A stretch of 64,000 nt of DNA, from positions 11,532,001 to 11,596,000 of the forward strand of contig OZ176050.1 in the NCBI GenBank assembly GCA_964247055.1. The letters run 5' to 3'. A program made the position numbers and the translations under genes. Below the pieces are notes generated by a model. That model saw nothing but the letters and a program-made list of their open reading frames with translations, did not search any database and was not told the origin of the DNA. Positions within the stretch are counted from its first letter, which is position 1. Every line of letters begins with the position of its first letter. Of this stretch, positions 48,272-61,990 are shown in pieces. This DNA comes from Paragordius varius. Taxonomy: Eukaryota > Animalia > Nematomorpha.

Positions 48272-49224
48272 CAACCCGGGATTTTAAATGTTTAATTAAT
48301 TTCAATTATTTGTTGTATTTTACCATACGCACTGTTTTATGATTTTTTGCTTGTTTATTGATAATATCATTTTATCTATGTTAAACCGTTAAAACGGTCC
48401 TTAAAGAGAAAACTGAAACCAACTTTAGTTTCCAAAAACCATTGCGGCAAGCAATTTATATTGAACGTTTGTGTAAAACCCGATCAATTTATCATGATTT
48501 TGACAATATTGACCTTTCTTTCCTTGGCTTTATGGTTATAAAACCCAAATTTTGTATGTAAAAATATTTTTAAAGTCAAAACGATAAAACAATATGGTGC
48601 CATTTAAATTTTAAGCGAAATAATTATCTGTTTTTTTGATTGTGCATATTACAAAAAAACAAGTATGTGACATTATGAAATATAAGCTGAACGAACTATA
48701 ATCAAAGATTTTATTTTATTAGAAAAAATAAAAATACTTGAATATCTAGAACATGGTATATAAATTAATTTTTTAACATAGTTGCGCGTAATTGGGATAT
48801 CGAGATTTAGAACAAAGATAAAAGATCTGTTCTTTTCTCTTATATTCTACCTGTAAAATATCAGTTTTATTTTAACGTACCTATATATATATATGAAACA
48901 ATTTTATCTTTAACCTATCTAACTAGTGTAGAAGTTTATTCGAATACGATCTCATATTGAGTCTTTACGTTTGATTCAAAATGTTATATATTAAATTTTT
49001 TAGCATTATCTTTCAATTATTGGAAAAATTTAACTTTATCTATAATTATTATATATATATATATATAATTATGGGATAAAGTTAAGTGTATTTATTTTTA
49101 ATTTTAAAACTTATAATTACAACAAAACAAACCTATTTCATTTCTTCCCCATACTTTTAGTTTATTTCAATTTTTTATTCGGTAAAAATAAGTCGAATAA
49201 CTCTGTTGTATATCATAGTGCGGG

Positions 49225-50791
49225 ATGGGTTCTATCAACTATTCGTCCAAATTATTTTTCGGTATTTTCATTCTTACCCTTTTTTAAATTAGATTGGGTT
49301 TATACTCAATACAATTATTATAAGTACAATAAATTATATTTTTATTTTTATGGTGTAGTTCTTTGCGGCATAATTTTTGCCAACGCAAATCCTGGGCTCC
49401 CAGTCAGAAAAAGTGATGGCTCTGACACCAATAATTTGTATCGCAGAAATCATTACAGATCACTCTACAATAGTAACAAAAATGAGGATCAATTGATTTC
49501 GGCCAATGCCGCACTCAAAGGTAGGGATGATGAAATATCCTTAGGATCTAACCGGAATGTCAGGCGTGACAGTTTACAAGATAGTAGTAGCAAATCATCC
49601 AGTCATAAAAGAAACAAAGATTCCAGCCTTCAACATCACCGTAAGAAACCAACCAAATCTGATAAAATGATTATGGCAGATAAGAGCGGAGGGCCCCCTA
49701 GCGATTTATACGGACCGGATCCAAACCGTGGTGGCGGCGGCTTACCGCCTCAACATCATATAGATCCGAGTTATGGGCCTATCCCTAGCGGCCTCTTAAA
49801 CAGTTATAACCGACAACAGGCGCCTGAGGATGTCATTCCCAGTGATGTGCTCATGGTCCCCGGATCTATTTGTCAAACTCATGACATTACAGACGGCATT
49901 TTGAGTGACCCCTCAGATTGTTCCAGGTACTTTGTTTGCGCGTTCGGCCAAGAATTTTCGAAGTCATGTCCGTTAGGCTTGTTGTGGAACCAAAAAACGC
50001 ATTCTTGTGATTGGCCCGAAAATGTAACGTGTTCCAACAAAAACCGTAAAATAACTTAAATATATTTGTCCTGCATACTTTTCAATTTGTTATTTGGCTA
50101 AATATTTATGTTTGCATAGATATGATGGAGAATATGGTTGACTTAAGATGTGGTCGCGACAAAATTAGCTGTGCCTCTGGAAACCAATGTATATTCCTTG
50201 ATCAATTATGTGACAAAAAAGTCGATTGCCTAGATACATCCGATGAAATTACTTGCGGTAAAAAAAGTTCTATTTATTTTAACTAATAAGTAAAATGTCT
50301 GATTACAAAAGTTCCTCAATCATTCCTGCTTGTTATGATGTAATGGCCCAAATCTCGTCGGTGTAGCTCTTATTTGTATAGTAAAGGTAACAGTTACAAT
50401 ACACCATCGATCTTTAAAATGTATAAATGGTTTTTAACAACATGATCAATTTTCTTATAATCCAATTTTTACCCTTACTTACAAGAAAAGCGCATCCAAT
50501 ACGTTTTTAAATGAGAGTTTTTGTGGTGGTATGTCGACATAATTTATGCTATTCAACAAATTTAAAGGTTTATTTAATAAATTTTTAGATCCCTACAAGG
50601 TTGGTGTGTTGCCAGGGAAAGTAGTTTCAGTCGATGGGGGTACAATTATACCCTTTTGCGGTTCAGGCCATGCTTTATGCACGAGCCGAACTCAATGCGT
50701 AATAATTTCACAGCTTTGTGATGGTGTCGAAAATTGTCCAGATGGATCAGACGAAGCGGAAGAAATGTGCCTTAAATCACCAAGAAAATAA
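49225..50791 (+). CDS. Secreted protein: low-complexity N-region, CBM14 (peritrophin-A) chitin-binding domain and two LDLa repeats
   Basis: Exons 49225-49261, 49359-50045, 50120-50257 and 50589-50791 join in frame. Signal-like MGSINYSSKLFFVLCGIIFANA; CBM14 DPSDCSRYFVC...CPLGLLWNQKTHSCDWPENVTC; LDLa CGRDKISCASGNQC...CDKKVDCLDTSDEITC and CGSGHALC...CDGVENCPDGSDEAEEMC; stop TAA. Confidence 0.85.
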
Positions 50792-51078
50792 AATATATTT
50801 GCCAATATTTGAGACGAAATCATTTATTACATACATATTTTATTTATTATTTAGTAGATGTCTATTTCAAACAAAATGTCACATAATGACTTTTATTTAT
50901 CAATGCACCACTGATACAGAAGTGTCTTAAATCACCAAGAAAATAAAATTGGCCAACATTTAACACACACATTTATTATATAGTTTATTTATTTAATATC
51001 ATTTTGCATATTATTGCATCATATACTATCTCAAACTAAAATGTTTTTATGATTAATTAATGCACTGCTTAATAATAA

Positions 51079-51856
51079 TTAACTGAAATATTTTTCAAAT
51101 AAAGATTTTAATTTTGAATCTTTGACTGGTTGTTCATGGTACTCAGATTGTGATGAAGGAAATAAAATTTTAGATTTATAGGATAAATCAGGGTCGTCTT
51201 TTGGGTTAGTTCCAACCAAAGTGTTAAACAATTTCGTAAAAAAGCTTTCACGTGGATGCTGCGGTTCATGTAAAGCAATATCATCTTTAACATGACTTAA
51301 TTCATTTTTTATCATTGATTCGATCGGCCTTTGATGCATACTCGAAAAATCTGTATGGTCTTCCGTAACAACAGTGCCATCTGGTTTACGGATAGTTACA
51401 ATTTCTTTTATTTTATCCCCACTGGTTTCAATTACTTTAATTCGCTCATTCCCTAAATGGTCTCGTAATACACTTTTTGAAAAAGAAAACTAAATGGTAA
51501 AAATAAAAATAGTTACTGTGTGAATCTTGGGTGTATCATTATCTTGAAATACAGAATCGGTTTTATTATACTAAAATAAATTGGAATGGTATTACTTCGG
51601 GTTTAAGCATTTGATCTCTTAACGAACTTGGATTATTGGAATTAGAAAATGAAGAAAGACCTATATTTATATATGCTCAAACTTTGTTCTGGTGCTATAT
51701 CAATTTCATTGCTTAGTTGGTCAAATATTTTAAATATATCATTTGTAATTATTTTAATATCATTTCCAAACCAATCGGCTTGTCCAAAGTTTCTATAATT
51801 GATTAATATATAAATTGTTAAAACTTGTCAAAATCTTTTTCAAACCAATCAAACAT
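51079..51856 (-). CDS. HAX1: HAX1-like (HCLS1-associated protein X-1), 223 aa
   Basis: Exons 51856-51825, 51792-51683, 51660-51596, 51570-51517 and 51489-51079 total 672 nt of open frame after removing GT-AG introns of 32, 22, 25 and 27 nt. Motif SLRDQMLKP resembles HAX1 LRDSMLKYP; FSFSKSV and TIRKPDG resemble the HAX1 C-terminal region. Confidence 0.72.
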
Positions 51857-51864
51857 TTTAACAG

Positions 51865-52173
51865 ATGGAGTCTATCTCGCAAGAGTTTATTAGTGCAAAA
51901 AATCCTTTAATAGCTCGGAATTTGCAATTATCATCGGGATTAAAATTTGGCGTTGACTTTTTGGGTTACTTAGGTTTTTTGTTTTTAATATAAGGGGATC
52001 CAAAACACTTTCACTCGCTTTTTATGTTTTTCCTGGAAAAAGAAAAGAATTTACCAGTTTTAGAGCTTATAACTCTTATTCGATTGGCAACTATAGTTAA
52101 AAAAATATTTGTATATGTATATAAGGAAAATGATGAATTTACTTATTTAACATTTAATTATATTGAACTTTAA
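51865..52173 (+). CDS. TSEN34: tRNA-splicing endonuclease catalytic subunit, TSEN34/Sen34-like, catalytic domain only (95 aa as modelled)
   Basis: Exons 51865-51973 and 51995-52173 (288 nt) with a 21-nt intron that contains an in-frame TAA. Gives SGLKFGVDFLGYLGDPKHFHS...RLATIVKK, with the putative Tyr/His/Lys triad present. The 5' end may have additional upstream exons. Confidence 0.85.
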
Positions 52174-52180: not shown

Positions 52181-54436
52181 TCATTCATATAATGTTTTTA
52201 TTGGATCTGCCCTTATTTCACTCATTCTGCATGTAATGGCATTCTTGTATTGGTTCTTGTTAATAACCTTGTATTGGTGCTTTGAGGAAAAAAGAGGTAT
52301 TTGTTTTATAACATATTTGTATAATATGTTTGCTCCATTGTTTTCCATTGGCAAGAGGCACCATACAACAACGCTAATCTAGAATTAAGTTAATTTTAAG
52401 TTAATCGTTTAATTGGGTTATATTTGGCAATGTAAAAGATTATAACTGAGCAATTAAGGATTGGTGCTTAAGTACGTAAATTTTGGCATTGTTTTTATAA
52501 AACATGGAAGAAATTTAACAATTAGCCTTGTGCTGATAGCGATGGTCATAGGCTGGGCCCTTTGTTGGGTACTTGGTTATTTTTTTTTTCAAATTTCCTC
52601 ACCAAAAAATCAAGGGCCAAAACAATAATTATGCATAGCTATGTGACTTTGCAGATATTAATACTCCAAACAAATACATCAAAAAATTAATAAGATATTC
52701 AGTGCCATAAAAAGCACTTTTAGGGCCGTGGATTGAGTATCACTACTTTAAGGGCTATTTGTCTCTTTTAATTAAAACTATTTTTAAATGGAGCCAAATA
52801 ATTTCTGCTTGGTTATAAGATTCAGGCGACTTAAAAAGTTATATCTTACACAACATGTTGTTTGAAATATCAATATTTTTTAGATTTTTTAATATCAAAA
52901 ATAACAAAAAATTACTAAATAAAATTCCGGATTCTATTAACAATCCTTTATATAGAATAGTATCGGGAAAACAAAAAAGTAAATCCTACTGCGAAATTTT
53001 ATATTAGTATTTTAGCATTAGAAAAAAAAGTTTTATTGCAATATTATATTTTTGTTTATCAATATCATTTTTTATTTGAATCCATAACGCTTTACGTATT
53101 TCCTTAAATAGGCATAACATTTTTTAAAAATAATATTTAGATGACATTAATATTTACTTTACCCATAGTTTGTTTCACACGTAAAACCCATATCAAAACA
53201 TGTTAAACATCTCAATGATTGTGGTTGACTAACATTTTATTTAAACTATTTTTAATATAATGTTACCAAATTATTTATACCTTTAAGAGATGATAGACTG
53301 GGAACCAATCTAAAAAATTGGAACATAGATATTCACAAAAGCTAAAAGTTGCGAAAACTATCCAATAAGCCAACCATTGTTTTGATTTGTCAATACTTTC
53401 GCTTTCTATGGAACATATCCTATTCATGCATGCAAATATATATTTTAGCTAATAGTAAGATCGTTAAATATGGATTTCTCTCTTAATTATATTTGCTAAT
53501 TGGCCTATTTATAGCGATTTGTTTACAAACCAATATGATAGATATATCATTATTTTTGTAATATTAAATTAAATAAAACGAAATCGATTCGTGTTTTAAA
53601 GAATACTTCAATAAAATCTAAATAAGCTATCGTAAAAAGAATTTAACATTTTAATCCATATTAAATATTATAAAGCAAATGCATTTTTTAATTTGACTTA
53701 CGAACAATAAACGGGATAGAAAAAGCCGATGAAAGCACTAATGATTGGCGCAGCATGTCCCAACACAATTTGATACACAATGAGAATTGAAATGCAACCT
53801 AAAATAATTATTTTGTTAAAATATTAATTGTATTCAAATTATCATTTATGCTACTGTTATTCGTCCAAATAATATTAGAATTAATTTAAATTATGTGTTA
53901 ATATTTTATTTTATTCATGTATTAATAAAAATTTTATACACTAACCATTTAATTGGTTTAAATGAACAGATCATGTAGTATGTGGAGCCAACACATTGGC
54001 TTGAAAAAAAATCAAGTTGTCTTGAAACCAAATTAAATAAAGATATGATATTTAAAAGAAAAAAATATAAAAAATCTCTTCTCGATTAGGATGATGTTAC
54101 TGCATCCGAAACATTCTAATATTAGTAGTTTAAATGTTGTGGGAATACAGTTTTGGCTTTTTATATCATTGTGTTTTTTAAAAGGAACTCCCACTGTCTT
54201 TTTTTGACGGAATTAATATGAAATATATATTGCCTTAATTTAATTTAACTATTTATGAATATAATTGGAAACAATAAAATAATTTATAGGTAAAAATTTA
54301 TTATTAATGTATTTTTGGCTTAAAATCAGGATCGATTGAATAAAAAAGTTTATGGCTATATTGCAATATACTTTCTTAAATATTGACAAGACATACCTAG
54401 AAACAGAATATTATAATTTAAATTGAAGAGATCCAT
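52181..54436 (-). CDS. REEP5: Receptor expression-enhancing protein 5/6 (TB2/DP1/HVA22, Yop1 family)
   Basis: Exons 54436-54397 (MDLFNLNYNILFLG, tentative first exon), 53798-53702 (...FIGFFYPVYCS), 53419-53281 (IES...QWLAYWIVFATFSFCE...WFPVYHLLK) and 52378-52181 (VWCLLPMENNGANILYKYVI...KHQ) give 474 nt in frame. Confidence 0.88.
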
Positions 54437-59714: not shown

Positions 59715-61990
59715 TCACTTTTTTGTCCTAGCTTACATATGGGGGTAATTTTATATTTCAGAATTTATTAATAAACTATAGTTTTGAAAGTTATTTATTA
59801 AAATATCAGCCATTGTTTAAATAAATTATATAAAAAGCTTATTTTACAGTTTTGTGCCTAAATCTTCAGCTTCAAACAAAATATTTCAACAAACAGCTGA
59901 TTTTAAAATCAAAATATATTTCGTTTTTGCTTGCAAAATGTACCCTAAAAACTGTTTAAAGTTAATTATTTATATTTCCTAATGAAAATATACATTTGTT
60001 TGTCTGTTGCATTAGTGGTTTGAAAAAATTCATACAAAAAATGGCCGCAAAAAAGTTTGGGATGAATATCTTAATCCATATTTTTTATAAAAAAAATTGG
60101 ATATAGAGTCGAGGCTAAGTATATTAAAAATCGGCTAAATACTTTAAATACTTTTTAAGATATTTAAATTAATCGCTCAAGGATTTTTTTACCTATGCAA
60201 GTATTGCAATTTATGTTTTTTGTCTGTATTGGAAATTGTAGTGATGATAATATTTTCATAGACTTATTTATTTTTTTGCATATGCAAATAAGATATCTAT
60301 TAGCTATTTACATATATAGCTTTATAATCATGCAGTGACATCATGGATTGTCCTTAATTTATATTTGTTTTTTTGATACATGTAATATACCTTCAAAAAA
60401 AATTCAATATAGAACCCGATTTTATAATAAATGTATTATCATCTTGTATTATACTAGCGTTGTGGTCGAACCCAACATAACATATATAAAATGACCTCTA
60501 AAGATAATGGAGTGTTAATCGTGTTTTGGAGCTATCTAGGGACTTTAAAAGTTTAAGAGGTGCACAAATTTATTTTTTATCGAGTACAAGAATAAAAATT
60601 GATAATAAAATTTTACCCACAGGCAAAACAGCAGTTTATTGACTATAAATTCCGGGATTCCAAATTGTAATCTCATAATACTATAATAAAGTGTTAAAAC
60701 TAATAAACTTTAAAATAAATTATTATAAAATTTTGCCACATCAAGTGAAAATTTAAACCCATAATTAGATACTAGAAGTTAGCAACCGTTTGACTCATAA
60801 TCAAAAAGCAAATTGTTTATGATGATATTTTAATTTTGATAATCTAAAGTAAACTCCATAATATTAAAGATATTTTATGGTGAACTTACAAGTGTTTCAG
60901 CTGTTTAAAGCATGGCCATAAATTATGTACAAGATCTACCACCAGAAGGTGGTTATAAAATATTTGATGTAGCGAGAAAAAAGTGTGCCTCTAAATACAA
61001 TGGTTTTGCTATAACTATAATGATAGGTTGGTTCTTTTTATCAGTCGCAATATTTCATAGTTTTCTAGCTCTTCATTTTATGAATAGAGAACAAGATTAC
61101 AAACAGTATTTGTTGCTAATATTAGATTTTTATATACGGATTTGAATGATGCGAAAATTGCATTAATGCCATTGTATACTGCAGAAATGGACAGAGTGTA
61201 TGTTAATTTTAATAATTAAGGTTCTTACGACATTTAAAGAATAAGCGCGAAAATGAGCGCATATTAATGAAGGATGTGCCTAATTGGAAAGTTGGGCATG
61301 TATTTTCCGATCCTATATTTAAAACATTACCCGAGGATTACTACTTTTCGCCTTCACACGAAGAATTTTATTCGGCAGCCGCCGGTAAATATGCTATGGA
61401 TAAATTTATTGATTTAATTATGTAATTAATAAATTGTTTGCGTTGTTATCATATAAATATCATATTTTTTAAATATAACCTAAGATAACAGAACCTGATG
61501 AGTTGTTTTTTGACTAGATTGAGCTTTTGTATTCCGTTGGTGGAACAACTTTTTAAGATTTTAAATTATATATTATTACTGTTTGGATATTTCTCGACTT
61601 TACTTTAAAAATCTTCAGTTAATTGGCGCAAAAAGTTTATGATCTCTTAAAATTGCTAAGGGTATTTTATGCTTTTAATTTCAATATAGAGGCGTATAAT
61701 TTGTAAAAGAATAAATATATTGGCACGATTTGGTTAACTTTTTTTATTTCACTATTTTGTCCTAGTTTACATATTGGCGTTGTTTCATATCCCAACAATT
61801 TAATAAACTACAGTTTGGAAAGTTATTTAAAATTTATTTATCAAACATTGTGTTCATGAATTAGATAAAAAAGCTTGTATTTTTTACACTCTTGTGACTT
61901 CAAGAGTCTAAAATTGGACAAAACACGATCGAAACAAACAGCAGTTATTTAAATCAATATATATCAAGTTTTTGCTGGTAAGTTGTCTAT
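59715..61990 (+). repeat. Pair of ~250-bp dispersed direct repeats (~59715-59960 and ~61745-61990) flanking NDUFA13
   Basis: Shared ttttgtcctag(c/t)ttacatat, taataaacta(t/c)agttt(t/g)gaaagttattta, aaaaagctt and aacaaacagc. Family not assigned. Confidence 0.6.
60912..61425 (+). CDS. NDUFA13: NADH dehydrogenase (ubiquinone) 1 alpha subcomplex subunit 13 (GRIM-19), 148 aa
   Basis: Exons 60912-61002, 61027-61105, 61126-61197 and 61221-61425 (447 nt) separated by introns of 24, 20 and 23 nt. Motifs QDLPPEGGY, IALMPLYTAEMDRVFLR, LMKDVPNWKVG and PIFKTLPED. Confidence 0.93.

Follow-up and report, generated by a model that had tools for sequence, protein, structure and literature searches.

Positions 51079-51856 of the window (the whole 64,000-nucleotide stretch of DNA analyzed here) likely harbor, on the minus strand, a real protein-coding gene of five exons separated by four consecutive micro-introns. 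The locus is a dense and clean example of micro-introns in a nonconserved gene that was missed by reading based on open reading frames (ORFs). With respect to the encoded protein, the boldest reading, to which we give a probability of roughly 0.45, is that the gene specifies a compacted orthologue of HAX1 in a nonvertebrate, neuron-bearing animal, which is not a myxozoan and apparently not a dicyemid either, and that its expression needs the removal of four consecutive introns of 22-32 nt.

Organization of the locus

The features of the locus, in window coordinates, are as follows.

51825-51856, minus strand: exon 1, 32 nt; ATG at 51856-51854; codons 1-10 and two bases of codon 11; codon LLR +1.6
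51793-51824, minus strand: intron 1, 32 nt; GT..AG; 88% A+T; common to all 115 frame-keeping paths
51683-51792, minus strand: exon 2, 110 nt; codon LLR +3.4; predicted single helix
51661-51682, minus strand: intron 2, 22 nt; GT..AG; 77% A+T
51596-51660, minus strand: exon 3, 65 nt; encodes LRDQMLKP; codon LLR +6.6
51571-51595, minus strand: intron 3, 25 nt; GT..AG; 76% A+T
51517-51570, minus strand: exon 4, 54 nt; codon LLR +4.8
51490-51516, minus strand: intron 4, 27 nt; GT..AG; 81% A+T; in-frame TAG at its end
51079-51489, minus strand: exon 5, 411 nt including the TAA at 51081-51079; 136 codons; codon LLR +23.9
50972-51002, minus strand: candidate poly(A) signals, AATAAA/ATTAAA-type strings 81-101 nt past the stop; pattern matches only

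The five exons (32 + 110 + 65 + 54 + 411 = 672 nt) join into a single ATG-to-TAA frame of 223 codons plus the TAA, the closest in-frame stop upstream of the gene ATG being a TAG at 51874-51872, five codons away. In the program-made ORF list, all that is visible of the gene is a part of exon 5, 86 residues from an ATG, which is the partial view of the last exon that the sequence-only reading had described. That reading had also proposed the four minus-strand introns and a single 223-residue frame containing LRDQMLKP; the introns were verified on the sequence in their coordinates, lengths and GT-AG boundaries, as was the frame, in which the motif is located in exon 3.

The frame of exon 2 reaches an upstream stop without passing any ATG, and a splice is therefore required at intron 1. 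In the case of exon 5, the frame opens exactly at the AG and its first 50 codons precede its first in-frame ATG (51339); this openness upstream of the ATG, taken together with the absence of an ATG from the exon 2 frame, means that splicing is demanded. The lengths of introns 1-4 modulo 3 are 2, 1, 1 and 0, i.e. the first three are not multiples of three, and the 27-nt intron 4 ends in an in-frame TAG, such that retention of any single intron would break the protein, consistent with the frameshift or in-frame TAG that had been anticipated on retention. A search of the genome indicates that the gene is present as a single copy and that exon 5 has neither a paralogue nor a retrocopy.

In the mechanism that we propose, a pre-mRNA would be transcribed from the minus strand of this single-copy gene in an AT-rich, neuron-bearing animal, the ordinary GT-AG spliceosome would remove the four A+T-rich introns (32, 22, 25 and 27 nt) within the first 370 nt, and the spliced product would be an mRNA for a 223-residue protein.

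Conserved genes with micro-introns in this genome

The introns of the five-exon gene have the properties of ultra-short spliceosomal introns, i.e. GT-AG termini, a length of ~32 nt or less, restoration of the frame on removal, and coding flanking exons, and introns of the same class are present in conserved genes of this genome. On the plus strand, a tRNA-splicing-endonuclease domain (PF01974, E 1.8e-7) that begins 8 bp from the ATG of the five-exon gene is split, 110 nt from that gene, by a 21-nt GT-AG intron (51974-51994), which is in-frame, contains a TAA and lies between DFLGYL and GDPKHFH, with the PF01974 match running through it. Matches to GRIM-19/NDUFA13 (PF06212) at 60924-61377 are bridged by introns of 20 and 23 nt. 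On contig 4, homology supports a 28-nt GT-AG intron in an HSP70 gene (about 12482549-12482576), with an ordinary 66-nt intron downstream of it, revealing that tiny and normal introns coexist in one gene. The micro-introns of these conserved genes and the four described here all start with GT[A/T], are at least 75% A+T and end with [A/T]AG.

Animal introns of <30 nt were long thought to be absent, and published cases are confined to myxobolid myxozoans and Dicyema japonicum, where they are backed by Iso-Seq and where short introns are flanked by short neighbors (PMC13644364). The introns described here resemble that set in their GT-AG termini, their length of 20-32 nt, their very high A+T content with little signal beyond GT[A/T] and AG, and their occurrence as runs within a single gene; they differ in that ordinary introns of ~66 nt and longer coexist with them and in that they are predicted from genomic sequence, whereas the published introns are known from Iso-Seq (PMC13644364).

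Identity of the encoded protein

The 223-residue protein is predicted to comprise a short N terminus rich in aromatic and acidic residues, a helix, LRDQMLKP, a small β-meander with KPDG, and a low-confidence tail. Single-sequence AlphaFold2 models give one helix for exon 2 (residues 2-30, pLDDT 79) and, for exon 5, a four-strand β-meander (residues 2-44, pLDDT 65-82) followed by low-confidence helices. HAX1, a protein of ~280 residues that is disordered for the most part, is associated with mitochondria and is a partner of the CLPB disaggregase; its family is, as we take it, that of PANTHER PTHR14938 and InterPro IPR017248. Five collinear motifs are presumably shared with human HAX1, i.e. an N-terminal FD.F, NFG...IF, LRDxMLK, FS.SKS...KPDG, and a C-terminal LF..[WY]F; the third, which we take to define the family, presumably matches the human protein at 6 of 7 positions. 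The KPDG β stretch and the aromatic C-terminal tail presumably also follow in the same order as in the human sequence.

Like HAX1, the predicted protein is small and largely low-confidence or disordered, but it is shorter (223 compared with ~280 residues), it lacks the acidic, Gly-rich stretch between the N terminus and the helix, and exon-wise searches with it reveal no significant similarity. The predicted helix of exon 2 followed by LRDQMLKP is reminiscent of the arrangement in human HAX1, the longest helix of which (residues 79-94) is inside the CLPB-binding region (residues 81-139) (PMC7670567). The overall pattern of motifs makes it plausible, with the odds leaning slightly in its favor, that the protein is a HAX1 orthologue.

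An alternative, which we consider less likely, is that the five-exon gene is real, and that it encodes a fast-evolving, lineage-restricted protein whose HAX1-like motifs are coincidental. In support of this proposal, every search that was run (exon by exon, on separate exon translations) was blank. Pfam and NCBIfam scans of exons 2, 3 and 5 returned sub-threshold noise only, with no HAX1 match for any exon, and sequence searches of the PDB with the same three exons likewise returned noise. With exon 5, phmmer against 1.84 billion representatives gave 0 matches at E <= 1e-3; a word search gave no match at E <= 0.01 or at E <= 10 among proteins of 75-238 residues, a range that excludes most HAX1-sized ones; and Foldseek of the AlphaFold2 model against the PDB gave nothing at E <= 0.001. 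Recognition in the ESM Atlas is low, falling short of what known families typically show, with weak leads only (top score 0.87, to a mollusc cluster).

A blank result is, however, no surprise for a largely disordered piece of 136 residues, which needs ~45-50 bits to pass in a library of 1.84 billion sequences; the blank exon searches thus count only weakly against HAX1, which is itself described as lacking recognizable homologues or domains. Moreover, five motifs in the HAX1 order, with 6 of 7 positions presumably shared in LRDxMLK, would seem jointly unlikely to arise by coincidence. In favor of the lineage-restricted protein, two reports (PMC9564044; PMC7670567) state that HAX1 lacks known homologues and domains, such that weak matches are easily over-read. 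Literature searches on the LRDxMLK motif of HAX1 and on invertebrate HAX1 found nothing usable.

Were the HAX1 assignment correct, it would add a short and divergent member to a family described as lacking homologues, and could make it easier to delimit which residues around the CLPB-binding segment form the conserved core.

Splice junctions and coding signal

When dynamic programming was used to find the longest chain from an ATG to a stop in a 1.8-kb region, with at most four GT-AG introns of 20-35 nt, it returned exactly the five-exon model. When all paths with no more than five introns, each of 18-45 nt, were enumerated, 115 kept the frame; all of these use intron 1 and none has fewer than four introns. 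By codon score, the five-exon model is the top four-intron path (40.4 bits, vs 36.3 bits for the runner-up), and intron 3 is present in 13 of the 15 best-scoring paths, the exceptions being ranks 12 and 14. Junctions 2-4 have frame-compatible alternatives in this enumeration; introns 2-4 as modeled are the best solutions, not the sole ones.

It is improbable, in our judgment, that the same gene employs other junctions, such as an 18-nt intron at 51490-51473 in place of the 27-nt intron 4, with the 27-nt segment being translated, or an intron of 34 or 43 nt from 51660 in place of intron 2. Such paths preserve the frame, but they score lower in codon usage (by 4 bits for the 18-nt intron and by ~7 bits for the replacements of intron 2) and make an 81% A+T stretch coding; an 18-nt intron is, in addition, below the 20-28-nt range of the homology-supported introns found here. 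The exact junctions that we infer are each somewhat less probable than the five-exon gene itself.

More radically, only the last exon might be real, encoding for example an 86-residue protein from the ATG at 51339, with the upstream exons and introns being chance pairings of GT and AG. Pairs of GT..AG separated by 18-45 nt are common in the AT-rich DNA around the locus, and elsewhere in the window the same path search turns up, on both strands, numerous spurious chains that are 330-500 nt long. In none of 300 Markov-generated sequences was there a chain as long as that of the five-exon model, most of which is contributed by the 411-nt exon 5. When exon 5 was kept and the upstream DNA randomized, 3-6 of 400 trials attained the same length; frame compatibility alone is thus worth only P ~0.01, and a conditional chance of ~1% for such an extension is not negligible.

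Codon usage argues against the last-exon-only proposal. Scored with a codon table whose training set was 45 open frames, each 110 codons or longer, in the 264 kb around the locus, exons 1-4 have a combined codon-usage LLR of +16.6 bits, with each exon being positive and with a density (0.19 per codon) close to that of exon 5 (0.175). Open segments of matching length, drawn from the same 264 kb, have a mean of -11 bits, and 16.6 bits was attained in 1 of 10,000 draws (P ~1e-4). Also against a protein that starts at 51339, the first 50 codons of exon 5, which precede its first ATG, are open and coding-like (LLR +8.8, P 0.03), and the introns are markedly richer in A+T than the exons (12-24% vs 25-32% G+C). 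We regard the last-exon-only proposal as a long shot. A training set of introns, built from ORF-bridging GT-AG pairs in the 264 kb, was dropped as too noisy, overlapping frames and repeats giving many candidates.

These results bear out the earlier suggestion that phase-compatible GT-AG pairs of this kind are unlikely by chance (0/300 in Markov sequences, ~1% conditional on exon 5, and P ~1e-4 for codon usage). The proposal of a hidden five-exon gene with four micro-introns is supported by the frame statistics, by codon usage, and by the homology-supported micro-introns in adjacent genes.

Comparison with the myeloid leukemia factor family

Membership of the myeloid leukemia factor (MLF, PF10248) family, in place of that of HAX1, is very improbable for this protein. 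The lead in its favor, a rank 9 Atlas feature match (score 0.78) to a PF10248-bearing cluster, is set against exon Pfam scans with no PF10248 match, BLASTP of exon 5 with both MLF exons, which returned nothing, and a PF10248 search that finds a real MLF gene on contig 6 (E 1e-17) and not this locus, even at E <= 10. Resemblance to the MLF family is limited to small size, low-complexity regions, a β-rich segment and the weak Atlas lead, and does not extend to profile or pairwise similarity; MLF identity was thus rejected, with the family HMM unmatched, the pairwise comparisons empty, and a separate bona fide MLF gene in the genome. The latter gene (contig 6:4009431-4011797) has at least two exons, which are ~2 kb apart and hence separated by an ordinary long intron.

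The host genome and implications for splicing

The assembly comprises 110.6 Mb in 44 contigs, with ~27% G+C, and the window is in a 15.2-Mb contig. The genome encodes LDL-receptor-A and peritrophin-A domains, Cys-loop receptors are found at nine loci or more, and a probable mitochondrial contig (C44:5980-10320) contains a full COX1 with six in-frame TGA codons, TGA being a sense codon, and a piece of COX2 downstream. These domains and receptors, together with the COX1 contig, indicate a neuron-bearing animal; the Cys-loop receptor loci and the COX1, which is a typical one, set it apart from myxosporeans. Nematode-type cuticle-collagen N-domains (Col_cuticle_N) were not found in the genome. The C-terminal 142 residues of COX1 (2548-2973 of C44:5980-10320) have at most 55-62% identity, over most of their length, to similar-length proteins in a collection of 5.8 billion proteins, from which a close relative of the organism appears to be absent in the form of a similar-length COX1 piece. 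Upstream of COX1, at positions 691-1479 of C44:5980-10320, there is a 262-codon open frame of ~21-residue tandem repeats.

The N-terminal third of the protein encoded by the five-exon gene is reachable only via the four micro-introns, which shows how much coding sequence standard ORF and gene finders would miss here. The ~370 nt containing the four introns also represent a compact substrate for testing how the spliceosome handles introns of 22-32 nt. If the reading as a HAX1 orthologue is correct, then few if any animal genes would have sub-32-nt introns in a denser run, and the animal may represent a third lineage in which such introns occur.

Neighboring genes

A gap of 8 bp separates the minus-strand ATG of the five-exon gene from the plus-strand ATG (51865) of the tRNA-endonuclease-like gene (window 51854-51867), and the 5' ends of the two genes must therefore overlap. 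The plus-strand ATG at 51865 is immediately preceded by TTTTAACAG, which resembles a 3' splice acceptor; spliced-leader trans-splicing at the endonuclease-like gene may be one possibility. The stop codon of the endonuclease-like gene (52171-52173, plus strand) is 7 bp from that of the next minus-strand open frame (52181-52183), such that their 3' ends would overlap. Farther along the minus strand, a TB2/DP1/HVA22 (REEP-type) domain is present at 53257-53412. On the other side, a convergent neighbor on the plus strand (49046-50791), with a peritrophin-A chitin-binding domain (E 5e-15) and an LDL-receptor class A domain, ends within ~300 bp of the stop codon of the five-exon gene.
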